A program made the translations under genes and the position numbers. A stretch of DNA of 64,000 nucleotides, from positions 62,001 through 126,000 of the IMG/VR virus record IMGVR_UViG_3300049793_000366; one strand, given 5' to 3'. Below, piece after piece: positions 5,061 through 63,701 of this stretch. Below the pieces are notes generated by a model. It saw only the letters and a list, made by a program, of their open reading frames with translations. It had not been told where the DNA came from and made no database searches. Positions within the stretch are counted from its first letter, which is position 1. The number at the start of each line of letters is the position of its first letter.

Positions 5061-5570
5061 TTACTTGTTAGTGTTAAGCAATTCCTTCTTTGTAGTTTCT
5101 ATCTCTGTTTTCATATATTTATCGAAATCCTGATAATCTTTATTAACCTTACTCTTCAACGCTGTTAACTCATCTGTTAACTTTTTATTATCATTTTGTA
5201 TTTGTGATAGTTGCGCTGCATTTTGTGATGCTAATGTTTTATCAGTTGTACTCTTTAAGTCATTTGTTTTATCCTGACCATCTTTAATACTTTTTTCTAT
5301 CTCACTTGCTCTTCTTTCGCTTTTAAGTATTTGAGCATATTTCAATAGATAGGCGTTCGGGATTTTAACACTACCGTTGACTACATTTGCTTTATCTAAA
5401 ATTCTCTTAGCTAAAGCATCAGGGTCTTCATTTGCATTATTCAAATAGATTGATTTCAATTGACCAGCAAAGGACTTATAATCCTTAACCATTTTACTTT
5501 TTGTTTCTAAACTTTGCGTTATAGATTTATCTAGGTCGTTAAACTCTTCGAACAATGCGATGTATTTCAT
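5061..5570 (-). CDS. Coiled-coil protein with capsid-targeting-like leader (putative internal head protein)
   Basis: Probable true start MKYIALFEEF at 5570, directly after an AATATATA motif (5576-5583). Confidence 0.6.
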   Translation of the reverse strand: MKYIALFEEFNDLDKSITQSLETKSKMVKDYKSFAGQLKSIYLNNANEDPDALAKRILDKANVVNGSVKIPNAYLLKYAQILKSERRASEIEKSIKDGQDKTNDLKSTTDKTLASQNAAQLSQIQNDNKKLTDELTALKSKVNKDYQDFDKYMKTEIETTKKELLNTNK

Positions 5571-5615
5571 ATAAGTATATATTAAATGAAAACATGAGTA
5601 TTTTGTCAAATAAAA

Positions 5616-5637
5616 AAGCCCTCTGATGTGAGGGCTT
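5616..5637 (-). terminator. Intrinsic terminator after the ankyrin gene
   Basis: AAGCCCTC-N6-GAGGGCTT stem with an adjacent A-tract (U-tract on the minus strand). Confidence 0.7.
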
Positions 5638-5640
5638 AGT

Positions 5641-7392
5641 TTATTGCTTGTTTTTACTGATATTATCCTTTAATAGTTTAATAATTTTTTGTGACCTAAT
5701 AGCTTCTTCGCCAGTAGAATCCTCAAGGGCAATCTCAGCCCATTTTATAGCTTGAACATATCCTCTATCAGCTCCATTTTCAATTAGCCATTGAACTAAA
5801 TCAAGGAATCCATTTTCAGCCGCAAATTTTAGTGGCATACCTTCTTTAGAGTTGATGTCAACACCTTTCTCTACTAAATATTTAATAAGTGGTAAGTTAC
5901 CTGTTCTACAAGCCGCTCTAATAGCATAAGAATCTTCGAAGTTAGGGTCAACACCATATTCTTCTACAATATACTTAACAGCATCGAAGTCACCTGATAA
6001 TGATTTAAATGCTTCCTTATTCATATTAGCACCATGTTTAAGTAATAACTTTAACATATCAAATGTTTTAACCAATGATACTGCTGTTTTATTTTTCTCA
6101 TAAGGGATATCCGGATTAGCACCATTATCCAATAAGAATTCAGCAACTTCTAAATTATTCGATTTAACAGCATTTCTAAGTGGTTTACCAGCTTCGATGT
6201 TAATATTAGCACCTTCCGCTAAACACTCTTTAATTCTATCAAGTGATGGAAGCTTTTCAGCTTTTAATTCTCTTGATGCTCTGTTATATTTTTCTTTTTG
6301 GTCTTTTTCTTCATTCGTCATTGCTCTTACAGCCGCATTCTCTTCTTCATCTAATCTTTTTCTAACTTGTCCTTCATCGATATAAGAGTCATTCTTAGTA
6401 TGTGCAGTGTCAAAAGTACCTTTCATATTAACTGTACAACCAATGATAGACTTTAAATCTGTTGGTGGTAAAGCATAGTCAAAAATAGCATACTGCTTTG
6501 TAAATTTATTCTCGTTACCAACGTATTGGTCCCAATGTCCTTGCGTTCTTGCGATACACCAGTTTGTTTGAGCGCATAATAATCGACAAGCATCAAATGA
6601 TTTTAATTCAACGATAACTCGTTCTTTTTCTTCATTCATAAATGCGATTGTAGCACCCCACTTTTCACCATATTTAGCATTAACATCTTCAACCTTCTTC
6701 AATAGTTCAGTCAAACCATCATTAGTACAAGCCTTAACGTATTGCTCCATCCTTTTAGTAGCCTCATCTGCTGTCTTAATAGCTGAAATCTTTTTGAAGA
6801 ATTCTTTTCTAAGAATTGGATCCAAATCGAATAGACCAATAGCAGCACCATCAAATCTTTCTTTTAATTTACCAGTGATACGCAAAACGTCATGTTTTAA
6901 CTCAGATGGTAACTCATCAATAATCTTTTTTACCTTACGGTAGTTTTTAATACGTTCGATATCATCGACTAAATCTTCATAAGCTGTTCTATCTTCAAGA
7001 CCATATCTCTTTTCAGATTCTAAATATTTATCAACTTGTTTAGGAAGCTTGTTTAAGCTATCTCGATTTTCAAGTAATGTATTATACAATGCTGTTAAAT
7101 CATCCATTGATACTTTATCTCTAAAAAAGAATCTTGTGAATACCTCAGTATAACCTGGGTTTCTTTCAACAAGTTTTTTAATTTTTAAGAAGTCAGGATC
7201 ATTTTCAGCCTTTCTAATTTCGTCTGGTGTTAATTTAGCTTGAACTGGTGCTTCTCCCTCTTTAGGTTCAACAGGAGTTTCACCCTCTGTTTTAGAAGCT
7301 AAATATGTATCACGCATGAATTTTTTAGCATTCTGTACGTTTTCATTGACAGTTTCTTTGTTTATAAAGTCGTTGTATTTACGCAAATTCAT
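5641..7392 (-). CDS. Ankyrin-repeat protein with N-terminal domain and capsid-targeting-like leader
   Basis: C-terminal ankyrin-like repeats (PLRNAVKSNNLEVAEFLLDNGANPD, AIRAACRTGNLPLIKYLVEKGVDIN, PLKFAAENGFLDLVQWLIENGAD); N-terminus MNLRKYNDFINKETVNE; central TNWCIA..W..Y motif. Confidence 0.85.
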   Translation of the reverse strand: MNLRKYNDFINKETVNENVQNAKKFMRDTYLASKTEGETPVEPKEGEAPVQAKLTPDEIRKAENDPDFLKIKKLVERNPGYTEVFTRFFFRDKVSMDDLTALYNTLLENRDSLNKLPKQVDKYLESEKRYGLEDRTAYEDLVDDIERIKNYRKVKKIIDELPSELKHDVLRITGKLKERFDGAAIGLFDLDPILRKEFFKKISAIKTADEATKRMEQYVKACTNDGLTELLKKVEDVNAKYGEKWGATIAFMNEEKERVIVELKSFDACRLLCAQTNWCIARTQGHWDQYVGNENKFTKQYAIFDYALPPTDLKSIIGCTVNMKGTFDTAHTKNDSYIDEGQVRKRLDEEENAAVRAMTNEEKDQKEKYNRASRELKAEKLPSLDRIKECLAEGANINIEAGKPLRNAVKSNNLEVAEFLLDNGANPDIPYEKNKTAVSLVKTFDMLKLLLKHGANMNKEAFKSLSGDFDAVKYIVEEYGVDPNFEDSYAIRAACRTGNLPLIKYLVEKGVDINSKEGMPLKFAAENGFLDLVQWLIENGADRGYVQAIKWAEIALEDSTGEEAIRSQKIIKLLKDNISKNKQ

Positions 7393-7395
7393 ATA

Positions 7396-8796
7396 TTACT
7401 TATTAATTTTTGATTCTTCTATTAAGTTAGCCTCGCGTAAATAAATCTCTACGGACATACTATCCTTTATAAAGCCAGAAAGCTTTTTAACTTTTTCATA
7501 ATCTTTAGCATCTAAGGCATCATCAATCTCACTACGTAAATCACTTTGAGACCATCCTGAATAATCTGTATCATCTGATTTAGTTTCTTGTGGTGTTTCA
7601 GCTTGAGTTGGTTCAGTATTATAGTCATCTTCACCATCATTTGGTAAAGCAGTATTATAATCATAATCCTTAAGCTCCTTAATTGTAGCAGCTATTAAGC
7701 TATCAACCTGAGTTCTAGCTTCATCTGTTTTCATTAAGATACCCTTCATTAACTTTAAGAAGTCCTCTGCTGGTAATACTATCATTTTACCAAATACAAA
7801 TTCTCTAATATTTGGAAAGTCATCAACACTTGTATTTACATTTAAGAAATCACGTAAGTCAGCTGCTACTTCTGGTCCGTATCTGAAATCCTCAGCTTCG
7901 TCTTCAAATGTATCAGTATTCATTAATACCTTTTTAGCAAGTTCTTCACTTCCTGGTATTCCTGCTGATGTTATTAATTCATAAATACCCTTAACTGCTT
8001 CGTGTAATAACATTGGAAAGTCAACACCGATTGCTTTAACTGTAATTTCAAATTCATTATATGATTCTTCTTGTTCTTCTTGTGCTTCTTCCTCTTTTTC
8101 CTCTTCCTTATTAGGGTCTTCTGGTTTATACTCTTTTGGTTTCCATTCAACTTTACAAGCTCCTGCTAAACCTTCTGGTACATTTTCCATCATATCACTC
8201 TTAGCTTCGATAGGAATAATCCAGTCTAACTTATCAGCAATAGAAGTAATTTCATTCCATACTTGAAATGCTCTTTCACCATCACGCTCACCTAATATTT
8301 GTTTAATGCCTTCTTTAACTTCTGGCATATTTAAGATGTGCTTTGTATTCTTAGCCTCACCTTGTGTTATAAGGTTTGCTATTTTTCTTTTATCAACTTC
8401 CGATTTCAATTCTGGATCTTCAACCTTTCTCAATTCTGGTAGTTTACAAGTTTCAGAATCACAATCATCCATAAAGTTTTTAACTGCTCTTCTACCACGA
8501 GCAAACTTAATATCCAATTTGATACCATCTAAGATAGCACCATAATTATCCATAATAACTTTAGTAGCTAAATTCTCAAGTTCTACTTCTTTACCAGAAA
8601 TTATTCCTTGTGATTCACCGACTAATTGCATAATCCTTGGTATTAGTGTGTGTGAATTTGTACGGTCATTAATACCGAATCTCTCTTTTGCTCTATCCTC
8701 TACGCTTTTAACGTACTTAGGTTCACTTCCCTTACCTGGAATACCATCATTATCTTTAATGCTGATTTCTTCTAAAAACTTCTTATAATCCTTCAT
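7396..8796 (-). CDS. Hypothetical protein (LLHEAVKG motif, short UVR-like helical pair near the C-terminus)
   Basis: 466-aa ORF starting MKDYKKFLEE; overlaps the upstream gene by a TAATG junction. Confidence 0.6.
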   Translation of the reverse strand: MKDYKKFLEEISIKDNDGIPGKGSEPKYVKSVEDRAKERFGINDRTNSHTLIPRIMQLVGESQGIISGKEVELENLATKVIMDNYGAILDGIKLDIKFARGRRAVKNFMDDCDSETCKLPELRKVEDPELKSEVDKRKIANLITQGEAKNTKHILNMPEVKEGIKQILGERDGERAFQVWNEITSIADKLDWIIPIEAKSDMMENVPEGLAGACKVEWKPKEYKPEDPNKEEEKEEEAQEEQEESYNEFEITVKAIGVDFPMLLHEAVKGIYELITSAGIPGSEELAKKVLMNTDTFEDEAEDFRYGPEVAADLRDFLNVNTSVDDFPNIREFVFGKMIVLPAEDFLKLMKGILMKTDEARTQVDSLIAATIKELKDYDYNTALPNDGEDDYNTEPTQAETPQETKSDDTDYSGWSQSDLRSEIDDALDAKDYEKVKKLSGFIKDSMSVEIYLREANLIEESKINK

Positions 8797-9029
8797 TATT
8801 TAACATAAGTTTTGATATCGTCGCCAGCATCATTTAAAAGGGCGATAAATCTTTTAGCAACATCCTCAGCACTTGCTTTAGGAGCAGGTTCAACAGATGG
8901 CTTATCTCTTCTTATTGGAGATGGTCTGCTTGGTCTTGGTGTTGTTGTAGGCTTGATACCAGGCGTTGTTGTAGGCTTAGTAGCCGGCTCAGCCATAGCA
9001 AAGGATTCAAATTTTTTAAGATATTTCAT
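8796..9029 (-). CDS. Small Pro/Thr-rich protein with capsid-targeting-like leader
   Basis: MKYLKKFESF leader, KPTTTP repeated twice; TATATATA at 9054-9061 upstream. Confidence 0.65.
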   Translation of the reverse strand: MKYLKKFESFAMAEPATKPTTTPGIKPTTTPRPSRPSPIRRDKPSVEPAPKASAEDVAKRFIALLNDAGDDIKTYVK

Positions 9030-9078
9030 AATTTCGGACTTTTACGTTTGCTGTATATATAAAATATTTAATTTTAAT

Positions 9079-9109: not shown

Positions 9110-9116
9110 TACAAAA

Positions 9117-16608: not shown

Positions 16609-16860
16609 TTACTTTTCTTTCTTAACTATCTCTAATTCTTCTTCAAGAGATTTCAATTTGTCATTTATTTCATCTAATGAAATTTCTGACCATTTTCTAG
16701 TAGTCATGTTATAGTAACCAACTAATGTGTTCACGCAATTAGCATCATCAGATCCGTTTTTTAAAAACTTAGTAGATTTTAGTCTTTTTAAGACAGCAAT
16801 TTGTGATTCAATGCAATCAACTGATTCATTTATCTGTTGTGAGTTCTTTAAGTATTTCAT
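16609..16860 (-). CDS. Small protein with capsid-targeting-like leader
   Basis: MKYLKNSQQINES. Confidence 0.55.
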   Translation of the reverse strand: MKYLKNSQQINESVDCIESQIAVLKRLKSTKFLKNGSDDANCVNTLVGYYNMTTRKWSEISLDEINDKLKSLEEELEIVKKEK

Positions 16861-18784: not shown

Positions 18785-20935
18785 ATGAAGTACGTAATTA
18801 ATCGCGAAGAATTTGTTAAAAAAATGAACGAAAGTGTTGATAAGACACAGTTTATCAACGAAGTTATGTCAAATGACATAGGCTGGGGTGATTCATTAGT
18901 AGGTAGAATGTTTGCTTCTATATTTAGAGTAGCTAAAATGGGAGTTGATAATAAGCGAGTAGACTTCGCTTTGGGTAGATTAAAGTCATTAGCTGAGAGT
19001 ACTATTGTTTTATCAGTAGAAGAAGCTAAGAAAGAGATAGAGACTCTTAAACAAGAGGCTGAAACAGTTGCTAAAAAAGAAGCATTTGTTGATGCTATTA
19101 AGAATAATCAAGTAGACACTGCGGTTAAAGCATTAGGTCAAGCAAAAGTTATAGAAGTTATCGCTGAATTACCAGAAGAAATACAACCAGTATTCCTTGC
19201 TATTATATCAAATAGTACAGCATTAGCTACATCAAACACATCTGCTACTGCTTCTGGTGGTACAAATAGCATTGCTTCTTCTACGGATAAACCAGAAGGT
19301 GCTGGTGTTTCAGATAAACCAGAGGTTGTTGGACAAGCGGCATCAGGTGATGAAGGAAAATTACAGAAGATTCAAAATACAATTAATTCTTTAAAGAAGA
19401 TTATTGAAGATAAGAAAGCAAAAGGAGAAGATACTGCTCAGGATGAAAATCAATTAGCAGTAGCCGAAAGAACTCATAAAGTTATATCAGAAAAATTAGC
19501 TAAGGCTAAAGCTGAGGCTGAAAAACAACCAGTAGCTTCGGCTGAACAGGGTGTTCCTGATTCTATACAAGAAGCTATTGCTATCTTAGAACATATTGTT
19601 GAGTCTTTATGTACATCTTTAAACTATCAACCAATTAATGAAGAGTTAACTGGTGGTATCAAAACTAACAGCATATTGGATGCCTTTAGAAAGCAGACCA
19701 ATAAAGAGGTTAAAGAGATGAGTAAAGAAGATGCTGAGAAAGAATTACCAAACGCTATTAAAGAGCTTGAGAAGTCAGCACAAGAAGATGTTAAGAAGAT
19801 TGCACAAGAAGCTAATGAAACTGGTAAGAAATACGAAACAGTTATTAAGTCGAATAAAAAAGTATTAACGGATCCAATTGAAGTATTGAGAATATTTAAT
19901 GACGTTAATAGAATTATGATTAAAGGTAATATACCATCTGTAAGAACTGGTGGTAAAGTTAGTGTATCAAGAGCTAATAACTGGGAGAAGTTAGATGGTA
20001 GTTCTGTTAACCCTACATCACCAGGTGGTGGTCCTTTTAGAAATATTAAATTATTCAGCAAGTGGAATGATGGTGTGTTAGCATTGATGAAAGATAAAGC
20101 ATTAGAATCATTTTTTAACAGTAAATGGATTCTTGTTGATGGTGAAGAGAAACAAGTTTCTTATACAATAACATCTTTCATTACTGATATGTTAAATGAC
20201 CAACAGGCATTTGGAAAACCAGGATATCAAAAAACATACTTAGAAAAACACTTTGGTGTTAAAGGTGTTAGTCTTGGTAATGACGCTAAGAAAACTACTG
20301 CTTCTGCTGATGCTACTGAAGAAGAAAAAGCAGAACAACAAGATGTTAAAGAATGGTCATTTGTTGAATATAATGAAAATTTAAACATATCTAATTTTGC
20401 TGATAAGAAAAGCTTTAGAGTTAAGTGTACTTATAAGATGGATGGTAAGGAAAAAGAAGGTTATGTTTACTTTGTAGGATATAACAATACACTTGAGAAC
20501 AATGAATTAATCAATAAAGATATATTCAAAGGTTCTAAATTATTCCAAGTATCACTTGATAATGATTATTATATTAGTCAGTATAAGGGTTCTTCTTATA
20601 AACCAAAAAGTAGCGTTGATGTAAATAAACAAGTTTACTCAGTTATTGTAAATGATAAGGACTTTAAGAAAGAAGGTTCATTTAATTTATATGCATTACC
20701 AGCTATGAAGAGAGACCAATTAGCTGGTGCTGATCCTTCTGCGTTAGATATAAAGAAAATAACTGCGATTGATGTTCTTTCAAAAGAAGGTAAGCCAGTT
20801 GTTATGAACGTTGGTGTTACTGATAAAGATAATCAATTAAAGAAGTCTGAAAAATGGTTCCCATATACTCAAAAGGAAACAGTACAAATAATGTACGATA
20901 AGTTTTCTAAAATGAAAGGGTTCAGAGCGGCTTAA
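18785..20935 (+). CDS. Large putative internal head protein
   Basis: Leader MKYVINREEFVKKMNES, further FINE and PINE sites, Ala/Glu/Lys-rich linkers; AATATATA at 18753-18760. Confidence 0.6.
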   Translation: MKYVINREEFVKKMNESVDKTQFINEVMSNDIGWGDSLVGRMFASIFRVAKMGVDNKRVDFALGRLKSLAESTIVLSVEEAKKEIETLKQEAETVAKKEAFVDAIKNNQVDTAVKALGQAKVIEVIAELPEEIQPVFLAIISNSTALATSNTSATASGGTNSIASSTDKPEGAGVSDKPEVVGQAASGDEGKLQKIQNTINSLKKIIEDKKAKGEDTAQDENQLAVAERTHKVISEKLAKAKAEAEKQPVASAEQGVPDSIQEAIAILEHIVESLCTSLNYQPINEELTGGIKTNSILDAFRKQTNKEVKEMSKEDAEKELPNAIKELEKSAQEDVKKIAQEANETGKKYETVIKSNKKVLTDPIEVLRIFNDVNRIMIKGNIPSVRTGGKVSVSRANNWEKLDGSSVNPTSPGGGPFRNIKLFSKWNDGVLALMKDKALESFFNSKWILVDGEEKQVSYTITSFITDMLNDQQAFGKPGYQKTYLEKHFGVKGVSLGNDAKKTTASADATEEEKAEQQDVKEWSFVEYNENLNISNFADKKSFRVKCTYKMDGKEKEGYVYFVGYNNTLENNELINKDIFKGSKLFQVSLDNDYYISQYKGSSYKPKSSVDVNKQVYSVIVNDKDFKKEGSFNLYALPAMKRDQLAGADPSALDIKKITAIDVLSKEGKPVVMNVGVTDKDNQLKKSEKWFPYTQKETVQIMYDKFSKMKGFRAA

Positions 20936-21292: not shown

Positions 21293-21320
21293 ATTATATA
21301 CGGGCTATTAATGAAAGTTT
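21293..21320 (-). promoter_or_regulatory. Candidate middle (ECF-sigma) promoter
   Basis: Minus strand AAACTT-N16-TATAAT, 5 nt before the ATG at 21288. Confidence 0.65.
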
Positions 21321-22293
21321 ATTTAATCTTGATATTGAAGTAAATCCAATAATTATGTGGTTTAACTGATACTAATATCTTTTCAGACCAATTGTATTTG
21401 GTTAACCAAGTTTTGAAGTTTTGCTTGATGTTTTCGTATTCACCTTGGTCGAGATTCATACCATCCCATTTACCAACACCATATAAACCAAATGACATAA
21501 CACCATTTGTAATTTGAATAGGGCTTCTTTCTTGATAGTTAGATGGTTTGTATTCAAGTAATTCACGCTTAACTATCATGAATAATTTTATAATTCTTAT
21601 TGTAGTATCTTTCAACTCTTTTCTAAAGCTATTTAAAGACTTGTTTGGCTTGTTTAAAATAGAAATCAATACAGAGTCAGTCATTTTAAATTGACCCATT
21701 AAAATGCGCTCTCCGTCTACTAATACACCATAATCTAAATATACTGTGTTGTTGTTAAATGAAACACCGTAAAACAAACCAGATGTCTTCTTAGCTTGTT
21801 GTATATGTTGTGCGCCTATTTGTAATGAGCGATATCTTGATAGTAAATCTGATATATCCATCTTATCACCATCACAAGACCAATAAGCATAATAATCTCT
21901 TGGACAATCTTTCCAATTAGGCTCTAATTTTGATTGTAAAGCTGTTAGAACGTAAAGAAAGCAATTAAATGTGTATTTGCCTGATATTGCTACTTTTTCT
22001 ATCTCATCCATTGTTGCTGTGTTTTCATTCACAACATCAGTAGTCGCAATAACTTCTGTGTGGTCTTGATGTCCAGATATAGTATCTTCAATTTCTTTAA
22101 TGAGTACCTTTTGGTCATAATCGCTTAATAAATTAACAGCATTTGATACTGAAATATCAGGGCTAATATTGTTTATATACTTATTTACAATCTTAACTAA
22201 ATCTTTATTACCTTCTAATTGCTTCTCAACCCACTGTCCTGTTGTGGACTCGGTTGACTCTGTAATAAAATCGCTATATTTCTTAATTCTCAT
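21319..22293 (-). CDS. Hypothetical protein with capsid-targeting-like leader
   Basis: MRIKKYSDFITES. Confidence 0.6.
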   Translation of the reverse strand: MRIKKYSDFITESTESTTGQWVEKQLEGNKDLVKIVNKYINNISPDISVSNAVNLLSDYDQKVLIKEIEDTISGHQDHTEVIATTDVVNENTATMDEIEKVAISGKYTFNCFLYVLTALQSKLEPNWKDCPRDYYAYWSCDGDKMDISDLLSRYRSLQIGAQHIQQAKKTSGLFYGVSFNNNTVYLDYGVLVDGERILMGQFKMTDSVLISILNKPNKSLNSFRKELKDTTIRIIKLFMIVKRELLEYKPSNYQERSPIQITNGVMSFGLYGVGKWDGMNLDQGEYENIKQNFKTWLTKYNWSEKILVSVKPHNYWIYFNIKIK

Positions 22294-45197: not shown

Positions 45198-45812
45198 TTA
45201 GTTTTTTATAGGGCAATGTGCCGCTGAGTAGATATAGCTATGATTTAACTTTACTATTAACCCGAATGATTCTGCGGCTGTAACAACATCATCTAAACAC
45301 TCGTTATCAGCACCGCCTACAATATAAACAGTTTGTCCTTTCAATGATTCAAATAATTTATGTAGCTTCTTAGGAACGTGCATCCATTGATGTTTATTAC
45401 CGATATAAACAAGAGGTGTTGAATATTTAGTCCAAATAACATCACCTTTCTTATAAGTTTTCTTGCTTAACTCTTTCCAATTCTCTATGATGTTTTTGAA
45501 ATGCTCAATATCAACATCATATTTATATCTTTTTTCTATAAATTGCTTCTGGTTAGGAAAGTCATACAAATCTATACCATCATTATTACTTTGATATGGG
45601 TCATATAAATATGTTTTATCTTTATCTTTTCCTTCGAAATGATTATCCCATATTTGATATACGTTGGTGAATTGTGAAGCATATTCCTTCAGTCTATGTA
45701 TATACATTTCAGTAAAAAACTTCTTAAAAGCTGGTTGTACATCAACTATAATTAGATTCTGATTAGGATTGCTATTTTCCTTAAATATTCTATATGGTAC
45801 CAAGCTTTTCAT
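45198..45812 (-). CDS. Isochorismatase/nicotinamidase-like cysteine hydrolase
   Basis: LIIVDVQP and IVGGADNECL motifs; leader MKSLVPYRIFKEN; AATATATA at 45817-45824. Confidence 0.7.
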   Translation of the reverse strand: MKSLVPYRIFKENSNPNQNLIIVDVQPAFKKFFTEMYIHRLKEYASQFTNVYQIWDNHFEGKDKDKTYLYDPYQSNNDGIDLYDFPNQKQFIEKRYKYDVDIEHFKNIIENWKELSKKTYKKGDVIWTKYSTPLVYIGNKHQWMHVPKKLHKLFESLKGQTVYIVGGADNECLDDVVTAAESFGLIVKLNHSYIYSAAHCPIKN

Positions 45813-45881: not shown

Positions 45882-46475
45882 TTATTGAGGTAATTCCTCA
45901 TTGCTTTCACCTTCTTGAGATTCTTCTTCTTTAACTTCCTCAGTTTCTTCTACTTTCTCTTCTGTTGATTCAACGTTTTCATCAACGCTTTCTTCAACAC
46001 TTTCGAAACCACCTTGTGATTCAACAGTTGGTTCAGTTTGTGCTTGGACTTGCGCCTGAGCCTGACCTTCTGGTTGAGATTGAATAGAAACTTCTGGTTG
46101 TTCTGGTTGTTCTTGTACCTGTGCTTGAGCTTGACCCTGAGCTGGTGGAACTTGAGCAACTGGTTGTCCAGGCTGTCCAGGTTTTACTTCACCTCCAACA
46201 AGCGCTGCTGTTGGGATAGCATCAGAATTAACAAAAGTTTGGTTTACATATTTAATGATTTCCTCAGCGATGTCTTGGTCACCATAGAAGTTTCTAAGAT
46301 CCTTACCGCTTTCGTCTTTTACTTTTTTAATTACTTGATTGATAAGTGATTTAGGGATGTCCACAACAGCTTTAACTTTGTAGATATCGTTTACCTGCAT
46401 CACAGATTCTTGAATTGCGTCACCTAATCTTTTTTTGATTTGGAAGCTTTCAAATTTTGAAACGTGTTTTTTCAT
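45882..46475 (-). CDS. Leader-bearing protein with a Gln/Glu-rich low-complexity tail
   Basis: MKKHVSKFESF; QPGQP, QAQAQ and EE-rich C-terminal half. Confidence 0.65.
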   Translation of the reverse strand: MKKHVSKFESFQIKKRLGDAIQESVMQVNDIYKVKAVVDIPKSLINQVIKKVKDESGKDLRNFYGDQDIAEEIIKYVNQTFVNSDAIPTAALVGGEVKPGQPGQPVAQVPPAQGQAQAQVQEQPEQPEVSIQSQPEGQAQAQVQAQTEPTVESQGGFESVEESVDENVESTEEKVEETEEVKEEESQEGESNEELPQ

Positions 46476-51991: not shown

Positions 51992-52282
51992 ATGAAACAT
52001 CTAAGAAGATTTAACGAAGAGGTAATAAATGCGGAAGAACACAAGATAAAGTTCAGTTGTGATTTTGATCCAAGTTATAGTAAAATGATTTTAGATGCTG
52101 CTGAATCTGCTGGTGTAGACCTAATGGTTCCAGAGGGAGTTAAAAGAAGATATGTAGAAGAAATGCTACATATGTTAATGACCGATTATATCGAGGTTAT
52201 GATGCAGGAAACATTAAACGAATGGGTAGACCACAATGAATCCACTTTCGAAGATGTTATGAAACAAGTTTCTGCTGAATAA
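51992..52282 (+). CDS. Small protein with capsid-targeting-like leader
   Basis: Probable start MKHLRRFNEE, directly after TATATATA. Confidence 0.6.
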   Translation: MKHLRRFNEEVINAEEHKIKFSCDFDPSYSKMILDAAESAGVDLMVPEGVKRRYVEEMLHMLMTDYIEVMMQETLNEWVDHNESTFEDVMKQVSAE

Positions 52283-52809: not shown

Positions 52810-54216
52810 TTAATTATCCTCTTCTTCATCTTCTTCTGGTACATCATCGTAGCTCTCATCTGCGCCCTGCCATGTACCATTCGTAGAATTAAGAACATAG
52901 TCGTAGTCAAAGCCAGAATCGTTTGTTAGCATAAGTACATCTCTATTATCAGTTAGGTAACACAATGTATCTAAATACGGATAATAAGTACCATCCATAT
53001 CATTATCAAGACTTACTCTCAATATAGCATTTGGTAGTTGTTCATTGTCTTTACATATCGACTTAGTATTATCCTTATATGACCATCCGTTTTTAATTGC
53101 GTAATTGATGAATAGCTTTTCATCAGAGTCATTTATTGAATAAATTCTATCCATAAATACACCCTCGATTGATATATCTTTTAATTCGTCTTCAGTAGAT
53201 ATATCATCTAAATACCAAAGTAATGCTCTACCCACGATTTTATCTTCTTTGGTTACTAAGATGAGCATTTTTACTTGCCCTGGATTATTAGTGTATATTG
53301 AGAAATACTTCTGACATCTATTTAATCTCATACACGAGTTCCATAAAGTACCCTTGTGTATTCTATTTTCATAACCATGATATGTAGAATAGTGGTAGTA
53401 TTTAGCAACATCATCACCTTCTACTATTTTAAACTCTACACCGATTTCATCCAAGTTTAATTCTTTTCTTAATGCTAAAAATTCATTTACGAACTTCTCA
53501 ATATCAGAGTCAGTGAATGTTGGTGTACCATCAAATGTAACAGTACCTTCTACTAATACAGGTCTTGACTTTATAAACGTAAGTGGTTCATATTTATAAT
53601 CAACCATTGCTATGTTTTTACCATTATAGAATCTATATTTAGACCAGATTTGTTCAGTTGTAGTTATTGATTCTGCTTTAGCCTCTACATTTATTTGTTG
53701 ACTATCAACTTCATCAATATTACCATTCTCGATATTAAGCTCACCTATTAGTTTACCAGACATCCTTAGTTTACCGTTAAGTTTAATCAGAGCATTTATA
53801 AACTTAATATCATCTTTTGATAATTGGTCTGCGCTATTTAATATTACTTTATTATTATCATAGAAGTAAAACTGACCAGTATAGGTAAAGGTTAATTTAT
53901 TAGTCTTTAAATCAGTGATTATTTTACGAACTAATCTACCAGTTTTGATTGACTGTCTCCTACTATCTTCGAAGTTTGCTAACCAGTCAATTGTGTCTAC
54001 ACGATTCTTTGCTAAGAATGATAATTCAGTTAGGTTAGAACCTAAGTCAATATAATCAGTTGAAAAAATAAAGGCATCTCTGCTTATTCTTATTTTCATA
54101 AGAAACTCAGCTATCTTATCCTTTTTAGCTTTTAATATCTCTAAAATACCATATAAGTCGGTAGACATCTCCAACTCTTCATTGATGCTATTAAATTTAT
54201 TAAAGTTTGTAATCAT
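52810..54216 (-). CDS. Leader-bearing paralog of 37876-39426
   Basis: MITNFNKFNSINEE; IKTGRLVRKI, TDSDIEKFVNEF, WNSCMR, QVKMLIL, VGRALLW and FMDRIY. Confidence 0.75.
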   Translation of the reverse strand: MITNFNKFNSINEELEMSTDLYGILEILKAKKDKIAEFLMKIRISRDAFIFSTDYIDLGSNLTELSFLAKNRVDTIDWLANFEDSRRQSIKTGRLVRKIITDLKTNKLTFTYTGQFYFYDNNKVILNSADQLSKDDIKFINALIKLNGKLRMSGKLIGELNIENGNIDEVDSQQINVEAKAESITTTEQIWSKYRFYNGKNIAMVDYKYEPLTFIKSRPVLVEGTVTFDGTPTFTDSDIEKFVNEFLALRKELNLDEIGVEFKIVEGDDVAKYYHYSTYHGYENRIHKGTLWNSCMRLNRCQKYFSIYTNNPGQVKMLILVTKEDKIVGRALLWYLDDISTEDELKDISIEGVFMDRIYSINDSDEKLFINYAIKNGWSYKDNTKSICKDNEQLPNAILRVSLDNDMDGTYYPYLDTLCYLTDNRDVLMLTNDSGFDYDYVLNSTNGTWQGADESYDDVPEEDEEEDN

Positions 54217-55001
54217 TAGTTAAATCTATTATTGAACTTCAAAAGTCTCTTTGAAGCATTTTTAAGTGGTGTTCTTTTAAATATTTGTTCCGACTCTCTA
54301 TTCCATTCGATAATGTCATCCAAAAGAGTACTGTTTATTTTATCTATCAATTCCTTATAATCCATTACACCAAAGTGTTCTATTCTCTTAAACATACTTT
54401 GACCGTTACCAATAGTTTCGATTTTATATGACATTGTATATTCATCGATTTTATTAACACCGATTAATATTTCAATTATAAAAGAAACAACATCAGACTC
54501 AGTAAACTTTACTGTATCATCTTTCTTAAGCCATAATTCTTTTTCGCTACCAAATGGAGAAAGCTCATCTATGAATGGAGCATCCCATTTTAATTTATAA
54601 AGTAAATTCTCAACCGGGCTTAATTTATCAACCGCGGTCTTTATTAATTCTTTCTTGTCAATATTACCGCTCAAGAAGTCTATTTCTTGACTATTCTTAA
54701 GTTCTTCTGTATCAAATAGCTCAGATAATCTTTTATCTTCATTCCATTCAACTCTTTTAACATCCTCAAGGTTTACATAGTGTGGGTTACCCTCTATCTT
54801 AACACCTATTCTACCATCTTCGATATCGAATGGTGTCAATGGTTCTTTCTCCCAATTTTCATTATCAGAATATTCAGATACTATTTCTGAATATATAACT
54901 CCGCCGGCTTTGATACAATCAACTATATCTTGCTCGGTGATATTGTTGACTTTGTAGTTCTCATTAATGAAACTATTAAAACTCTTTATCTTTTTCATCA
55001 T
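54216..55001 (-). CDS. Hypothetical protein with capsid-targeting-like leader
   Basis: Probable start MMKKIKSFNSFINEN, after TATATATA at 55007-55014. Confidence 0.6.
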   Translation of the reverse strand: MMKKIKSFNSFINENYKVNNITEQDIVDCIKAGGVIYSEIVSEYSDNENWEKEPLTPFDIEDGRIGVKIEGNPHYVNLEDVKRVEWNEDKRLSELFDTEELKNSQEIDFLSGNIDKKELIKTAVDKLSPVENLLYKLKWDAPFIDELSPFGSEKELWLKKDDTVKFTESDVVSFIIEILIGVNKIDEYTMSYKIETIGNGQSMFKRIEHFGVMDYKELIDKINSTLLDDIIEWNRESEQIFKRTPLKNASKRLLKFNNRFN

Positions 55002-56223: not shown

Positions 56224-57441
56224 ATGACCAAAATTCAAAAGTTTTTTCAGTTTAATGAAAGTGCGCTAGGCTCTACTTTTTGGAATTTAATTCCAGAGTC
56301 TATTAAGACTATTCATGCCGTTTTTCAAGCAAGTGGTTATAAGCTATTCTTGGTCGGCGGTGCTGTGCGAGATTTTATTCAAGATGATATTCCAAAAGAT
56401 TATGACTTAGCTACTGATGCTCACCCGAAAGAGGTCATGAGCCTATTGGATGGTTATGAACTTAACTTACAAGGTAAAGCATTTGGTGTGGTTGTGGTAT
56501 ATACCGAAGACCAACCTCTTGGTATGGAGATAGCTACATTCAGAAAGGATGTTTCTAAAGGTAGAAATCCTTTAGTTGAGCTTATTGGTGTTACAATAGA
56601 AGATGATGTTAGAAGACGTGATATCACATACAATGCGTTATTCTTCGATTTGGATAAAAAGGAGATTGTAGATTTAGTTGGTGGCGTTGAAGATTTGAAG
56701 AACAAAATCACAAGAATGGTTGGTGATGCGATTGAGCGATTAGATGAAGATTCATTGAGAATTCTTAGAGCGTTCAGATTCGCCGCGAGATATAACAGTG
56801 AACTTGATGCTGATTTAGTTTCAGCATTGAGAAGAAGAAACTGGTTGAAAAATATTAACCACGAGACTGGTAAGCTTGAAAGAATCTCACAAGAGAGAAT
56901 TTGGCAAGATGAAATTGTTAAAGCATGGAAACAAGCTAAGAACAACTATACCAAGTATTTAAAATTCTTCACTGAGTTTGATATGTGGCCAGAAGTATTT
57001 CCGGGTGCTGTAATAAACTCTGATATCGTTAAGTGTGAACACTTCGAGGTTTACATGGCTAACCTTTTCAGAAATATGGATGTGGATGTTGCTCACCCTC
57101 AGAAGTCAGAAGCAGTATTGGTAGCTAATTACAAAATTGATGGTAATACAGCCGCAGTGATTGTTTTCTTAGTTAGTTTGTTACAGTTAACACCACAGAA
57201 TGCTCTTAGATTGTATAGAACTAAGACAAGATGCGTTTCTATGGGCTTTGAAGATATAGACCCAATGATAATCGATTGGTTCAATGTTAACTCAATAACC
57301 GATTCGACACATTCTAAATTCATCAGTTACAGACCTACTGTTGATGTTGAGTTTTTAAAATCTCAGGGTTTTAAAGATAAAGCTCTTGGTGATGAAATTC
57401 AGCGATTAGAGGTGATAGAATTCACTAAGTTAATAAAGTAA
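56224..57441 (+). CDS. cca: Class II tRNA nucleotidyltransferase (CCA-adding / poly(A) polymerase family) without HD domain
   Basis: LVGGAVRD, PKDYDLAT, EIATFR, RRDITYNAL, GGVEDL, EDSLRILRAFRFAAR and ISQERI; leader MTKIQKFFQFNES. Confidence 0.9.
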   Translation: MTKIQKFFQFNESALGSTFWNLIPESIKTIHAVFQASGYKLFLVGGAVRDFIQDDIPKDYDLATDAHPKEVMSLLDGYELNLQGKAFGVVVVYTEDQPLGMEIATFRKDVSKGRNPLVELIGVTIEDDVRRRDITYNALFFDLDKKEIVDLVGGVEDLKNKITRMVGDAIERLDEDSLRILRAFRFAARYNSELDADLVSALRRRNWLKNINHETGKLERISQERIWQDEIVKAWKQAKNNYTKYLKFFTEFDMWPEVFPGAVINSDIVKCEHFEVYMANLFRNMDVDVAHPQKSEAVLVANYKIDGNTAAVIVFLVSLLQLTPQNALRLYRTKTRCVSMGFEDIDPMIIDWFNVNSITDSTHSKFISYRPTVDVEFLKSQGFKDKALGDEIQRLEVIEFTKLIK

Positions 57442-59701: not shown

Positions 59702-59702
59702 C

Positions 59703-60524: not shown

Positions 60525-61217
60525 TTAGATTGTTCTATTGACAAGTTCAATAGCACTTAAAGGAATTGAGTCAAATGTCATTACAACATCTTCTCTCTTG
60601 TGGAAATTTAAATCCATCCACCATTTATTTGGAATCATTGATGTGTCAATTCTCCATTTATCCATATCGTCTCTCCAATTATCACTGGGGTGATTTATAG
60701 CGAATACTGCTGGTGGGTATGCTAAGTCATTACTGCCTTTCCAGTTAGTACTCTGCTTATGATTTCTTGCTTTTATACCGTCTTTTAAAATCTCTTGTCT
60801 ATTAGATTTGTTAGAGAAGTGATATACATATCTATCGGTTTTAATTCTTGTATTGTGTATATCTTTAAAGAATAGGTTATAGCTGTATGTCCATGTACCA
60901 GTAGTTTCGAAGTCAAGTGAATCACCACCCATAAACTTTAAATCTGGTATTTTGGAAAAAGTATATGATAACATTACACCAATTCGCGTAAGTTTATGTT
61001 CCCACTTATCTAATATTTTGATAATAGAATCATGTGATTCTACTGAAAGATGTCTTATTTGTAATTCGTGAAAACGCTGTCTGTCTTTATCGTACTTAAC
61101 ATTATCTCTCTTTATTGATGATTCAACGCCTTGAATATCTTTAAGAATAGATTTCATATATGACTTAACTAATAACTCATTACTGACTGTCTCGTTAAAT
61201 GATAGTAGGTGCTTCAT
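60525..61217 (-). CDS. Leader-bearing protein with a putative ADP-ribosyltransferase-like C-terminal domain
   Basis: MKHLLSFNET; YVYHFSNKSNRQEILKDGI...AVFA...TFDSIPLSAI pattern. Confidence 0.55.
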   Translation of the reverse strand: MKHLLSFNETVSNELLVKSYMKSILKDIQGVESSIKRDNVKYDKDRQRFHELQIRHLSVESHDSIIKILDKWEHKLTRIGVMLSYTFSKIPDLKFMGGDSLDFETTGTWTYSYNLFFKDIHNTRIKTDRYVYHFSNKSNRQEILKDGIKARNHKQSTNWKGSNDLAYPPAVFAINHPSDNWRDDMDKWRIDTSMIPNKWWMDLNFHKREDVVMTFDSIPLSAIELVNRTI

Positions 61218-61636
61218 ATTAATTTAGCATTTTTATATCTTACCTTAATGTATTTAAATTCTGGATGTATAATCTGTGTACTCATTCTTACTGATGAAAC
61301 ACAATCTAAATCTTCTATTTTTCTAACTGCTTTATTTACTGACTTTTCTAGTTCTTCTATATTAGATTCTTTAGTTCCTGATATAATAAATTCATCCTGT
61401 ATTTTAATTACTGTGGATAGGCTACTCTTATCAATATTATCTTTAACGATGATAGATGTAGTTAATATATTAGAATGCTCGAATTTTGAGTTATGGTTCA
61501 TTTCGAATGTTCTTTCTCTATCTACGGTTATACCATCGTCAACCATACCAAAGAATATTTCAATACACTCGTTATCTGACATCACACCTGTGACTCCATT
61601 GCTATTAAATGATTCAAATAATTTAATGTGCTTCAT
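61214..61636 (-). CDS. Hypothetical protein with capsid-targeting-like leader
   Basis: Probable start MKHIKLFESF. Confidence 0.6.
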   Translation of the reverse strand: MKHIKLFESFNSNGVTGVMSDNECIEIFFGMVDDGITVDRERTFEMNHNSKFEHSNILTTSIIVKDNIDKSSLSTVIKIQDEFIISGTKESNIEELEKSVNKAVRKIEDLDCVSSVRMSTQIIHPEFKYIKVRYKNAKLI

Positions 61637-62609: not shown

Positions 62610-62644
62610 GTGTTATATATTAATTTCACCATGACCAAAAACAA

Positions 62645-62670
62645 AAAAAGAGACCCATAAGGTCTCTTTT
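62645..62670 (-). terminator. Intrinsic terminator after the lipoprotein gene
   Basis: AAAAAGAGACC-CATAA-GGTCTCTTTT. Confidence 0.75.
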
Positions 62671-62692
62671 CTGTAAGTATCGCGATTAACGA

Positions 62693-62866
62693 TTACTTTG
62701 TAGTGTCAACTGCTGTTGTAGTTGAACAAGCTGCTGTTGTGTCAACGGCAACTACTGCTGAATCAACTGCTGTTGAATCAGTCTTTGGAGCTTCAGCTTC
62801 CGTAGTGCTACCACCACAAGATGCAAGAACTACTACAAAGCCAAGTGCTAAGAATAAATTTTTCAT
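62693..62866 (-). CDS. Small lipoprotein (57 aa) with Bacteroidota O-glycosylation motifs
   Basis: Not in the ORF track. MKNLFLALGFVVVLAS-C lipobox, then GGSTTEAEAPKTDSTAVDSAVVAVDTTAACSTTTAVDTTK; own TATATATA (62909-62916) and terminator. Confidence 0.8.
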   Translation of the reverse strand: MKNLFLALGFVVVLASCGGSTTEAEAPKTDSTAVDSAVVAVDTTAACSTTTAVDTTK

Positions 62867-62975
62867 AATTTGTTTTGTTTTATTGTTTTTTAATTATTGT
62901 TTGAGTAGTATATATAAAGATGAACATCTTTAGTTTAGTGTGTTTTTGAAAAAAATTAAAATAATATATACATTT

Positions 62976-63701
62976 ATGAAGCAGAAGATTGAAAACCGAA
63001 AACAGCTAAATGACTTTTTCAAAAAAGTAAACGAAGAAGTTGATAAGTATCTTATTGAACATCAAATCAAACCAAGTAGACTTGCTAAGTATATTATCAG
63101 TAATGGTGGGATAGATAAGTTTGTTGAAGAGATTGGACTATCTGAAATTGATGGTATAAATAAAGTTGTTGACCAGGTTCTTAAATCAAGAGTTCATATG
63201 GAAAGGGATGGTATTATGAAGTTTGAGTCATTCAGACTAAATGAAGATGCTGTTGTAACTGGACCCAGCCTATTGACAGTAGATGTATTATTTGATACAA
63301 TCGGTAAGGCTACTATTGAACACGAGAAGATATTAGGGGATTACTTTGATACATCACTTGGTCACATAGAAGAATTTAATGCTTTAAAACATCTTTATAT
63401 CGTTGATTCAACAGAAGGTAAGTATTATGCTTATGCCTTCACTGATAGTGATATGGACACAATGTTCAATAACATTAAAGAGTTCGTATATAACAACATA
63501 CCACTTGAGGTAGAAGTTAAACTAACCGCTAATAAGTCAATTAGTATTCCGGTAACAGAAGCGAACGTAGAAGCTAAAGTAAATTCTTTGGATGTTACTT
63601 CAATATTGGAAGAATTATTTAGTGATTACACGATAGAGAAATTCGATACATCAAGTGATAATCACAACGAAGCTATCGTAATCTATAAGAAGAGTAACTA
63701 A
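62976..63701 (+). CDS. Hypothetical protein with an internal leader-like motif
   Basis: Probable start MKQKIEN after AATATATA (62963-62970); internal IMKFESFRLNED. Confidence 0.6.
   Translation: MKQKIENRKQLNDFFKKVNEEVDKYLIEHQIKPSRLAKYIISNGGIDKFVEEIGLSEIDGINKVVDQVLKSRVHMERDGIMKFESFRLNEDAVVTGPSLLTVDVLFDTIGKATIEHEKILGDYFDTSLGHIEEFNALKHLYIVDSTEGKYYAYAFTDSDMDTMFNNIKEFVYNNIPLEVEVKLTANKSISIPVTEANVEAKVNSLDVTSILEELFSDYTIEKFDTSSDNHNEAIVIYKKSN

Follow-up and report, generated by a model that had tools for sequence, protein, structure and literature searches.

In phage T4, the capsid-targeting sequence (CTS) MKTYQEFIAE directs diverse internal proteins, as well as foreign proteins, to the scaffolding core and is removed by the prohead protease (PMC8442874, PMC3012670, PMC5694885). 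[quoted passage not shown] A second system is provided by the inner-body or ejection proteins of phiKZ-like giant phages (phiKZ, 201phi2-1, SPN3US), whose heads are loaded with many non-structural proteins and whose N-terminal propeptides, thought to target proteins into the prohead, are removed after Glu by a T4-gp21-related protease (PMC5694885, PMC13282480). Huge Mahaphage-type genomes such as LR745206.1 and LR756502.1 (Al-Shayeb et al. 2020, PMC7162821) were described for their size, tRNAs, CRISPR and translation genes, and no mention of a shared N-terminal tag or of capsid targeting was found in the papers searched.

Here we examine a window of 64,000 nucleotides from a huge, uncultured soil phage (IMGVR_UViG_3300049793_000366, positions 62,001 to 126,000), in which a quarter of the genes carry an N-terminal tag of about 10 residues very like the T4 signal. 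A sequence-only reading of this DNA had proposed that about 20 unrelated proteins share a T4-internal-protein-like leader ending in (I/F/V/M)-x-E, that many of them follow a late motif, that the same type of site recurs in the capsid protein and the protease-scaffold, and that the phage thereby tags dozens of cargo proteins, enzymes included, for encapsidation and injection. What it observed in the sequence is real. All 20 leaders translate exactly from the start positions and strands assigned to them, and they are listed below with their leave-one-out (LOO) scores against a matrix of the motif, ↓ marking the inferred junction after the Glu.

5061..5570, minus strand: tagged gene, 169 aa, leader MKYIALFE↓EF; LOO 13.7; AATATATA ends 4-5 nt before the ATG.
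5641..7392, minus strand: tagged gene, 583 aa, ankyrin repeats (Pfam Ank_2, E=1.6e-20), leader MNLRKYNDFINKE(TVNE); LOO 9.7; downstream gene of a late-motif unit.
7396..8796, minus strand: tagged gene, 466 aa, leader MKDYKKFLE↓E; LOO 10.3; the LR745206 ortholog has MKNFKDFMNEE.
8796..9029, minus strand: tagged gene, 77 aa, leader MKYLKKFESFAMAE↓P; LOO 17.5; TATATATA lies 31 nt upstream.
16609..16860, minus strand: weakly tagged gene, 83 aa, MKYLKNSQQINE↓S; LOO 0.8; late-motif unit.
18785..20935, plus strand: weakly tagged gene, 716 aa, MKYVINREEFVKKMNE↓S; LOO 3.1; AATATATA lies 32 nt upstream.
21319..22293, minus strand: tagged gene, 324 aa, leader MRIKKYSDFITE↓S, the closest to T4 KTYQEFIAE; LOO 11.8.
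22283..23101, minus strand: tagged gene, 272 aa, leader MKVQKFEE↓Y; LOO 11.4; AATATATA ends 5 nt before the ATG.
36956..37321, plus strand: tagged gene, 121 aa, leader MIKKYQKYVNE↓A, in the head module after the capsid protein and M28 peptidase; LOO 9.3; orthologs in relatives have MKINKYKKFLEK and MKLKKYKDIFEK.
37876..39426, minus strand: tagged gene, 516 aa, leader MINRYNDFIVE↓S, paralog of 52810-54216; LOO 1.8, although the LR745206 ortholog MIKKYLDFIKES scores 13.3.
42401..42967, minus strand: tagged gene, 188 aa, leader MKIKLYE↓GF; LOO 7.6.
44696..45193, minus strand: tagged gene, 165 aa, leader MIKNWKSFNE↓S; LOO 6.9.
45198..45812, minus strand: diverged tag, 204 aa, MKSLVPYRIFKE↓N; LOO -5.4; orthologs have MKYIRTYESY (11.1) and MKHIKIFEDF (14.7).
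45882..46475, minus strand: tagged gene, 197 aa, leader MKKHVSKFESF...AIQE↓S; LOO 14.7; an ortholog has MKHIRTYENY.
51992..52282, plus strand: tagged gene, 96 aa, leader MKHLRRFNE↓E; LOO 14.1; TATATATA ends 4 nt before the ATG.
52810..54216, minus strand: tagged gene, 468 aa, leader MITNFNKFNSINE↓E; LOO 4.9.
54216..54998, minus strand: tagged gene, 260 aa, leader MKKIKSFNSFINE↓N; LOO 19.0.
56224..57441, plus strand: tagged CCA-type tRNA nucleotidyltransferase, 405 aa, leader MTKIQKFFQFNE↓S (Pfam PolyA_pol, E=9e-28; PHROG tRNA nucleotidyltransferase).
60525..61217, minus strand: tagged gene, 230 aa, leader MKHLLSFNE↓T; LOO 9.4.
61214..61636, minus strand: tagged gene, 140 aa, leader MKHIKLFE↓SF; LOO 21.2.
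41721..42404, plus strand: possible 21st tag, absent from the sequence-only list, on a NUDIX protein (E=8.5e-17), MDVKSFNNYNMDK; matrix score 12.2. Two NUDIX proteins of LR745206 are tagged, but here no Glu directly follows the motif and the promoter is host-type, so the assignment is uncertain.

Fourteen of the 20 leaders score 6.9 or more, whereas the 99th percentile of 381 internal-Met pseudo-N-termini from the same window is 3.3. Five leaders are weak (54216, 18785, 39426, 16860 and 45812), although the orthologs of 45812 and 39426 in relatives carry canonical leaders. Unsupervised EM on the N-termini gives log-likelihoods of 128-208, against 93-141 (sd 4-9) for random internal segments. 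The originally proposed ending, (I/F/V/M)-x-E, is too loose to be significant alone, occurring in 54% of N-termini and 37-47% of controls; the informative core is instead Φ-x-x-[F/Y] followed by E at +1 or +2, within a motif M-K-x-Φ-x-x-[F/Y]-x(0-2)-E that is often followed by S. Only the one pair noted above (37876-39426 and 52810-54216) is detectably paralogous among the 20 carriers. Of the functions originally proposed, the CCA-type nucleotidyltransferase and the ankyrin protein are confirmed by Pfam, while cysteine hydrolase, ART-like and zinc-finger labels received no Pfam or PHROG support among the tagged proteins at E<0.01.

A matrix trained only on the window finds the motif in three independent sets. 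In 81 related loci it is present in 149 of 1659 N-termini (9.0%) against 22 of 8167 internal-Met controls (0.27%), and in the complete 635-kb relative LR745206.1 it is present in 111 of 881 genes (12.6%) against 10 of 2909 controls. These Mahaphage-type genomes and related IMG/VR contigs share the same head module at 54-80% protein identity, and the same tag occurs on both orthologous and non-orthologous genes. In 50-kb stretches of T4, pT24 and Lak-B1 no N-terminus scores 7 or more, yet in the T4 stretch the only scores above 5 belong to IPII and IPIII, which at 5.6 rank first and second of 91 ORFs. The T4 CTS is thus the best hit in T4 DNA while nonetheless falling below the working threshold of 7.

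The tag is modular. In all, 131 tagged proteins fall into 110 BLAST clusters, and carriers have unrelated folds, including CCA nucleotidyltransferase, ankyrin, NUDIX, Rnl1, M15 peptidase, NFACT-R, 2H/Acb1-like and methyltransferase. The tag is present or absent among orthologs: one family has 9 members with MKHLRKFEEL and 6 orthologs that start directly at the mature sequence. In a 129-aa family, leaders of different length all end in an invariant E↓[S/G]KKDKFP junction. Across leaders, E lies at +1 or +2 from the anchor aromatic in 78%, and the next residue is S in 46%, then N, E and A. Orthologs of the CCA enzyme all carry variable leaders in which F10 and E12 are as invariant as the catalytic residues, and in a confident AF2 model of this protein residues 1-16 have pLDDT below 50 while the enzyme averages 88.8, so that the tag is predicted to be disordered. 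Codon usage in the leaders equals genome usage (same-codon fraction 0.61 against 0.58 expected), as expected for selection at the amino-acid level.

Tagged genes lie almost only in transcription units with the late-type motif [A/T]ATATATA, the promoter classes being assigned by association. That many leaders follow AATATATA holds: eleven have the motif or a one-base variant within 45 nt and the rest are downstream genes of such units, so that 19 of 20 tagged genes in the window, versus 37 of 56 others, lie in late-motif units. The exception is the CCA enzyme, the only tagged gene of the 20 behind a host-type (TAnnTTTG) promoter. In the complete relative, 95 of 111 tagged genes versus 317 of 770 others lie in [A/T]ATATATA units (odds ratio 8.5, p=2e-19), and 6 versus 220 lie in TAnnTTTG units. 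Equal frequency in early genes, which had been named beforehand as grounds for rejecting the idea, is therefore not what was found. The same motif precedes the portal, protease, capsid and sheath genes. Ligase, polymerase, helicase, clamp loader, terminase, sigma factor, portal and capsid protein lack the tag.

Candidate machinery for removing such a tag is encoded in the same window.

29592..31331, plus strand: portal protein (T4 gp20 family; Pfam Portal_T4, E=9e-59), untagged.
31393..33666, plus strand: prohead protease (residues 1-~170, predicted gp21 fold) fused to a scaffold; Pfam S77, E=0.0013; profile against PDB, 5JBL T4 gp21, E=0.002; AF2 plus Foldseek, top 3 hits 5JBL, E=6e-8. H74 and S129/S130 are invariant, and E19 and N169-E170-S171 are invariant candidate self-cleavage sites.
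32259..32707, plus strand: scaffold repeat array, 10.7 copies of a 14-aa unit EYLAENLDKNIAYS, each holding a Y-[L/I]-A-E↓N site.
33750..35426, plus strand: major capsid protein (gp23 family; Pfam Gp23, E=4.6e-27) with S-I-N-E44↓N-A-Y and P-V-L-E20↓N sites in the N-terminal propeptide, conserved across 63 orthologs.
35610..36959, plus strand: M28-family peptidase (Pfam, E=8.7e-7), conserved next to the capsid gene in relatives, untagged.

The Φ-N-E sites that had been noticed in the head proteins are present and conserved. Relative to T4, the present system shares the extreme N-terminal position and approximate length of the tag, the pattern of K, a hydrophobic residue, x-x, F and then E (MKTYQEFIAE in T4; MRIKKYSDFITE, MINRYNDFIVE and MKHLKKFNE here), an end in Glu followed by a small residue, attachment to otherwise unrelated proteins, a gp21-fold protease, a gp23-family capsid protein with a propeptide, and late-type expression context. 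It differs in scale (20 or more carriers in 64 kb and about 111 in a 635-kb genome, against about 3-4 in T4), in leaders that vary in sequence and length rather than being identical copies, in a preferred site of F/I-N-E↓S rather than I-A-E↓A, in the fusion of protease and scaffold, and in carriers that are mostly acidic and include enzymes up to 716 aa; packaging and cleavage, moreover, are here only inferred. Relative to the phiKZ-like phages, whose propeptides are mostly longer than 100 residues, are not a shared short tag and have a cleavage motif S/A/G-x-E with a small P3, the P3 here is hydrophobic or aromatic. The lineages are also unrelated, with Pseudomonadota hosts and virion RNA polymerase on the one hand and, on the other, a Mahaphage-type phage whose capsid protein is 29% and 25% identical to those of Prevotella phage Lak-B1 and Tenacibaculum phage pT24.

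Given these similarities, we propose that the leaders, of about 8-17 residues with the consensus M-K-[K/H/Y]-[L/I/Y]-K-K-[F/Y]-[N/E]-E followed by S, N, A or G, work like the T4 CTS. In this view, tagged proteins would be made late in infection and docked by the tag onto the scaffold/core while the prohead assembles; the gp21-type protease would then remove the tag after the Glu, trim the capsid protein at S-I-N-E↓N and degrade the repeat scaffold at Y-L-A-E↓N, and the mature proteins would stay in the head and enter the cell with the DNA. We consider this somewhat more likely than not. What the analysis itself establishes is that the tag is real, position-specific, conserved across the clade, selected at the amino-acid level, modular, predicted to be disordered, found almost only in late-type units and similar to the T4 sequence, and that a protease of predicted gp21 fold with conserved Glu sites is encoded; docking, cleavage, retention in the virion and injection are inferences, every functional step being indirect and drawn from sequence and predicted structure. 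The interpretation offered by the sequence-only reading is accordingly supported in part, through the resemblance to T4, the protease, the matching Glu sites, the promoter context, the modularity and the absence from replication and other non-virion genes, although the scale is larger than it proposed. Some observations sit less comfortably with the model. A set of 111 tagged proteins in one genome would far exceed any known packaged set, as T4 has a handful and SPN3US has about 50 head proteins of which 8 are processed (PMC5694885). The tagged proteins have a median pI of 4.8, with 83% below 6, so co-packing with DNA is less obviously favorable than for the basic T4 proteins. Many FESF/FEEF leaders place K, not a hydrophobic residue, at P3 of the first Glu, and the exact cut site is therefore uncertain. 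Cleavage-like motifs are not depleted in the mature parts of tagged proteins, which is uninformative rather than contrary.

Whether the tag is a genuine trans-recognized linear motif that does something other than load the capsid is the most serious alternative, possible although unlikely. It might be a recognition or cleavage signal for timed activation or turnover of late proteins, read by the prohead protease outside the head, the adjacent M28 peptidase, or the phage ClpS with host Clp, or it might be an address for another late assembly or compartment. The number and acidity of the carriers fit poorly with a DNA-filled head, the tag is conserved and predicted to be disordered like any short linear motif, and the phage does encode ClpS and a conserved M28 peptidase in the head module. 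However, the motif matches the T4 CTS specifically, the Glu junction matches the sites in the capsid protein and protease, several tagged genes lie inside the head module itself, and no compartment-forming gene was seen in the window. ClpS recognizes N-terminal L/F/Y/W, which neither the intact nor the post-Glu N-terminus provides.

Less probable still is common descent, in which the carriers form one or a few huge, fast-evolving paralog families whose N-terminus alone stayed recognizable. At least 6 LR745206 proteins share a further ...ELxDDGF motif after the leader, one paralog pair lies in the window, and about 90% of carriers have no Pfam or PHROG hit, so remote paralogy cannot be excluded. 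Yet the BLAST clusters, the clearly unrelated folds of the annotated carriers and the presence or absence of the tag among orthologs argue otherwise, and even then retention of only the N-terminus would require selection on it. An RNA- or DNA-level feature of near-leaderless late mRNAs (a translation-initiation region, promoter-proximal element or recombination cassette, with the peptide a by-product) is very unlikely and already largely refuted. The late motif does end only 4-5 nt before the ATG in most directly promoted tagged genes and the leader codons are A/T-rich, but synonymous codon choice is that of the genome, the hydrophobic position accepts L/I/Y/V/W/F with unrelated codons, and about half of the tagged genes are operon-internal without the promoter. 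Likewise, late genes with the same promoter spacing lack the motif (M28 peptidase, 28838, 39438, 57467, 61641), and the T4, pT24 and Lak stretches, all A/T-rich, show no such N-termini apart from the T4 internal proteins.

On balance, the tag is best regarded as part of a probable, greatly expanded counterpart of the T4 capsid-targeting/internal-protein system, apparently unreported to date. Its presence on a quarter of the genes in the window and on more than 100 genes in a complete relative suggests, but does not prove, an exceptionally large protein cargo delivered together with the DNA.

The window is 32% G+C and 94% coding under the standard code, and is identical to part of the 508-kb IMG/VR contig IMGVR_UViG_3300049793_000366; one of its proteins is also recorded on a 711,805-bp contig. 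A search of public sequencing runs found the sequence in a single DNA soil metagenome, probably the source, and in no RNA dataset. The nearest records in annotated collections are the 635-kb and 642-kb uncultured phage genomes LR745206.1 and LR756502.1, at about 77% DNA identity in head genes, which come from the huge-phage survey that named the Mahaphage clade (PMC7162821). The window carries a T4-like head and tail module comprising a portal (Portal_T4, E=9e-59), a protease-scaffold fusion, a gp23-family capsid protein (E=4.6e-27), an M28 peptidase, a sheath protein, a gp15-like protein and a large terminase. The window holds the following features.

31393-33666: protease-scaffold fusion, with the predicted gp21-family protease domain in residues 1 to about 170.
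32259-32707 (+): scaffold part of the fusion, with 10.7 tandem 42-nt (14-aa) repeats followed by a very acidic E/G-rich stretch.
35610-36959 (+): M28-family peptidase directly downstream of the capsid gene, conserved in this position across relatives; an unusual member of a head module that might trim or degrade released leader or scaffold peptides.
28265-28807 (-): TnsA-like endonuclease N-terminal domain protein between tail and portal genes, conserved in 46 related loci and so a stable part of the module rather than a stray mobile element.
40182-41699 (+): family-B DNA polymerase ORF of only 505 aa, with the exonuclease domain and just the first third of the polymerase domain; the gene may be split or interrupted.
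48300-48578 (+): phage-encoded ClpS adaptor homolog (Pfam ClpS, E=2.9e-16), conserved in LR745206.
50758-51378: ECF-type sigma factor.
47615-48130, 56224-57441 and 57467-58210: an RNA-repair gene set of HAD-SAK, CCA-type nucleotidyltransferase (tagged) and 2H-SAK phosphoesterase.
11270-12256 (+): bacterial-type phosphoglucose isomerase (SIS domains, E=8e-46), an auxiliary metabolic gene whose N-terminus MKEFIEKINEQ looks leader-like by eye but does not score.
59630-59702 (+): tRNA with anticodon CTA, labelled tRNA-Pyl by ARAGORN, which would read TAG as sense, although TAG is the stop of 10 of the 76 genes of the window.

The observation made by the sequence-only reading, that some 20 proteins share a T4-like N-terminal leader, holds: all 20 peptides translate exactly from their assigned start positions. 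The pattern by which it defined them, however, is too loose, as a hydrophobic residue-x-Glu motif (Φ-x-E) is barely enriched at N-termini (54% against 37-47% of controls). The leaders do share a tighter core, Φ-x-x-[F/Y] with the aromatic at residue 6-10, followed by Glu. Unsupervised EM finds far more signal in the 76 N-termini than in random internal segments, with log-likelihoods of 128-208 against 93-141 (sd 4-9). A matrix was built from 18 anchored leaders and each leader was scored leave-one-out; 14 of 20 score 6.9 or more, whereas the 99th percentile of internal-Met pseudo-N-termini is 3.3. Five leaders are weak (those starting at 54216, 18785, 39426, 16860 and 45812), although for two of these the orthologs in relatives carry canonical leaders. 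Only one pair of the 20 proteins is detectably paralogous. Of the functions proposed for the carriers (CCA nucleotidyltransferase, cysteine hydrolase, ART-like, ankyrin and zinc-finger proteins), Pfam at the thresholds used recognises only the ankyrin protein and the CCA-type nucleotidyltransferase; PHROGs adds nothing and gave no virion-related annotation for any tagged protein.

Applied to sequence it had never seen, the window-trained matrix gave scores of 7 or more, the working threshold, for 149 of 1,659 N-termini (9.0%) in 81 related loci, against 22 of 8,167 internal-Met controls (0.27%), a 33-fold enrichment. In the complete LR745206.1 it did so for 111 of 881 genes (12.6%), spread over the whole genome, against 10 of 2,909 controls (0.34%). 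Chance and composition are thereby excluded. The consensus of these independent leaders is M-K-[K/H/Y]-[L/I/Y]-K-K-[F/Y]-[E/N]-E-[F/S]. Glu lies at +1 or +2 of the aromatic anchor in 78% of them and the first Glu is followed by Ser in 46%, then by N, E, A or G, in keeping with a gp21-type site; in 'KFESF' leaders, however, P3 is Lys and the exact cut site is ambiguous. The motif is not a general property of A/T-rich phages, as 50-kb stretches of Tenacibaculum phage pT24 (86-136 kb) and Prevotella phage Lak-B1 (30-80 kb) give no score of 7 or more. In 50 kb of T4 the only two high scorers are IPII and IPIII, whose N-terminus is the classical capsid-targeting sequence (CTS) MKTYQEFIAE; they rank first and second of 91 ORFs with a score of 5.6, above the control 99th percentile but below the working threshold. 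Lak-B1 and pT24 appear to have their own recurrent N-termini, MNKLIKKL(V/M)E(S/G)LFDD and ...LNESLFDD (KL(x)ES|LFDD) in the former and MRDI(R/T)(D/H)YIKE(S/E)LE (MRDIxxYIKE) in the latter. These may be lineage-specific versions of the same kind of tag, which hints that the principle is widespread among large phages with T4-like heads.

Selection acts on the peptide. Synonymous codon usage inside the leaders equals genome usage, identical residues use the same codon in 61% of pairs against 58% expected, and the hydrophobic position accepts L, I, Y, V, W or F. The tag, 7-23 aa long, is also modular. The mature parts of 131 tagged proteins fall into 110 BLAST clusters, and the annotated carriers have unrelated folds: CCA nucleotidyltransferase, ankyrin, NUDIX, T4-type RNA ligase 1, M15 peptidase, NFACT-R, 2H/Acb1-like phosphoesterase, methyltransferase, Toprim, MazE-like and RNase T. 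The Rnl1-type RNA ligase and a 2H/Acb1-like protein are tagged in LR745206. In one family nine members begin MKHLRKFEEL-DYSTY while six orthologs begin directly at M-[K/N]-YSTY, and in the 129-aa NFACT-R family next to the capsid gene leaders of different length and sequence all end at an invariant E|[S/G]KKDKFP junction. In 28 CCA orthologs the leader varies, but F10 and E12 are invariant. A search for homologs of the CCA enzyme, aimed at cellular ones, returned only phage orthologs among the 120 best hits, and the entries of 374-376 aa that start at 'MW' look like alternative start calls, not tag-less genes. In a confident AF2 model of the CCA protein (mean pLDDT 88.8), residues 1-16 are below 50 and have no secondary structure; a conserved yet disordered segment is the signature of a short linear motif read by another protein. 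A subfamily of small tagged proteins in LR745206.1 (for example 37041-37391, 596245-596655 and 8750-9208) shares a second motif about 15 residues after the leader, (D/E)I.D.F.EL.DDGF, and the window gene 61214-61636 (…CIEIFFGMVDDGI…) seems to belong to it. The carriers are mostly acidic, with a median pI of 4.8 for the mature parts and 83% below pI 6, and their median length is 167 aa, ranging up to 716 aa; they are thus not small, highly basic, DNA-associated proteins of the classical IPI-III type.

An [A/T]ATATATA motif precedes the portal, protease, capsid, M28, sheath and other structural genes. This late-type motif, (T)AATATATA, often ends only 4-5 nt before the ATG (for example 5575-5583, 23106-23114, 39431-39439 and 45816-45824), which suggests leaderless or near-leaderless late mRNAs. 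A second promoter type, the Bacteroidota-type TAnnTTTG, identified with host sigma-A promoters, sits equally close to the ATG of ligase, NUDIX, HAD and CCA genes. When each gene was assigned the promoter type of its transcription unit, 95 of 111 tagged genes of LR745206.1 lay in late-motif units, against 317 of 770 other genes (OR 8.5, p=2e-19), and in the window 19 of 20 did so, against 37 of 56 others (p=0.016). Only 6 tagged genes of LR745206.1 lie in TAnnTTTG units, against 220 others. Late timing is inferred from this association alone. Untagged genes of the window include NAD-ligase, family-B polymerase, helicase, clamp loader, terminase, the ECF-type sigma factor, thioredoxin and a DNA methylase, and the large families of core head and tail proteins have no tagged member. 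Equal frequency of the tag in early or non-virion genes had been named beforehand as a ground for rejecting the packaging hypothesis, which survives this comparison.

The protease domain is assigned to the gp21 (S77) family. A single-sequence search against the PDB found nothing, but a profile of 32 orthologs has T4 gp21 (PDB 5JBL) as its best PDB match, at E=0.002, with the catalytic His and Ser motifs aligned. An AF2 model of only moderate confidence (pLDDT 65), from an alignment that left out sequences of annotated records, gives 5JBL chains as the top three Foldseek hits at E=6e-8, followed by herpesvirus proteases. H74 and S129/S130 are invariant, as are two Glu sites: E19 in the N-terminal segment, and N169-E170-S171 at the end of the domain, which aligns with the T4 gp21 C-terminal I-T-E|S. 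The capsid protein has a conserved S-I-N-E44|N-A-Y, and P-V-L-E20|N, in its propeptide, and each 14-residue scaffold repeat, EYLAENLDKNIAYS, holds a Y-[L/I]-A-E|N site. The Φ-N-E / Φ-x-E logic of the leaders is therefore the same as that of the presumed natural substrates of the protease. Protease-like sites are not depleted in the mature parts of tagged proteins (z between 0 and 0.9), a comparison that is uninformative.

In T4, diverse internal proteins share only a roughly 10-residue CTS that brings them into the scaffolding core and is then cut off by gp21, and foreign proteins fused to it are packaged too (PMC3012670, PMC8442874, PMC5694885). The tag found here has the same position, length, pattern, terminal Glu, inferred expression class and accompanying protease. 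The most economical mechanism is thus the same one, in which tagged proteins would dock on the scaffold, be cut after Glu, stay in the head and enter the cell with the DNA. The annotated carriers, covering tRNA and RNA repair, NUDIX, an Acb1-like phosphoesterase, an antitoxin-like protein, ankyrin and a cell-wall peptidase, would be useful in the first seconds of infection, which agrees with the model but is only suggestive. The interpretation that the tag serves encapsidation and injection is supported only in part. What the sequences establish is a specific, modular N-terminal motif selected as a peptide, whereas incorporation into the prohead core, cleavage, retention in virions and injection of an uncultured phage's proteins are all inferred, no step after translation having been observed. 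Given in addition the unprecedented number of carriers (about 12% of a proteome), their acidity and the ambiguous cut site of 'KFESF' leaders, this explanation is rated only slightly more likely than not. By contrast, the propeptides of phiKZ-like inner-body or ejection proteins, which exceed 100 aa and are cleaved at S/A/G-x-E (PMC5694885), are a poor match for leaders of about 10 aa with an aromatic or aliphatic residue at P3.

Other fates for a real motif remain possible, if less likely: the tag could direct activation, turnover or another late assembly, with ClpS and the M28 peptidase as conceivable partners, although the T4-specific resemblance and the head-module location argue against this. 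Common descent of one giant family is unlikely as a general explanation, given the unrelated folds and the presence or absence of the tag among orthologs, even though at least one subfamily shares more than the leader. An RNA- or DNA-level signal is very unlikely, being contradicted by codon usage, by operon-internal carriers and by untagged late-type genes with identical promoter spacing.

No paper was found that links capsid-targeting sequences to huge or mega-phages, and the 2020 survey, a 2021 comparative analysis and a 2026 review of jumbo phages do not mention such a tag. The mechanism class is known from T4 and, more loosely, from phiKZ-like inner-body proteins; what is new is the roughly 30-fold expansion, the diversification of the tag, the acidic and enzymatic cargo, and its occurrence in a Mahaphage-type lineage. 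A bolder and more tentative reading is that a whole clade of soil and freshwater huge phages (635 kb to at least 712 kb) may use a T4-like linear address tag to load more than 100 different proteins, mostly unknown and acidic, into the capsid. The annotated ones include RNA-repair enzymes (CCA-adding enzyme, Rnl1, 2H/Acb1-like), NUDIX, a MazE-like antitoxin, ankyrin and M15 peptidase. The virion would then deliver a pre-made starter kit and counter-defence arsenal, by far the largest injected proteome of any bacterial virus, and the tag would act as a sequence-readable label sorting huge-phage 'dark matter' genes into virion cargo and intracellular proteins.

Most genes of huge phages have no known function, and what fills their very large capsids besides DNA is not known. 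Even if the proteins are not packaged, a conserved linear motif on 12% of a proteome is a new sorting or processing signal. If the tag is an address label, function-agnostic sequence analysis alone could list the virion cargo of hundreds of uncultured megaphages, a cargo likely to be rich in first-minute counter-defence and RNA-repair factors. It would also show that the T4 capsid-targeting mechanism is ancient and can be scaled about 30-fold, and the natural repertoire of working tag variants could then inform the design of protein delivery in phage capsids.
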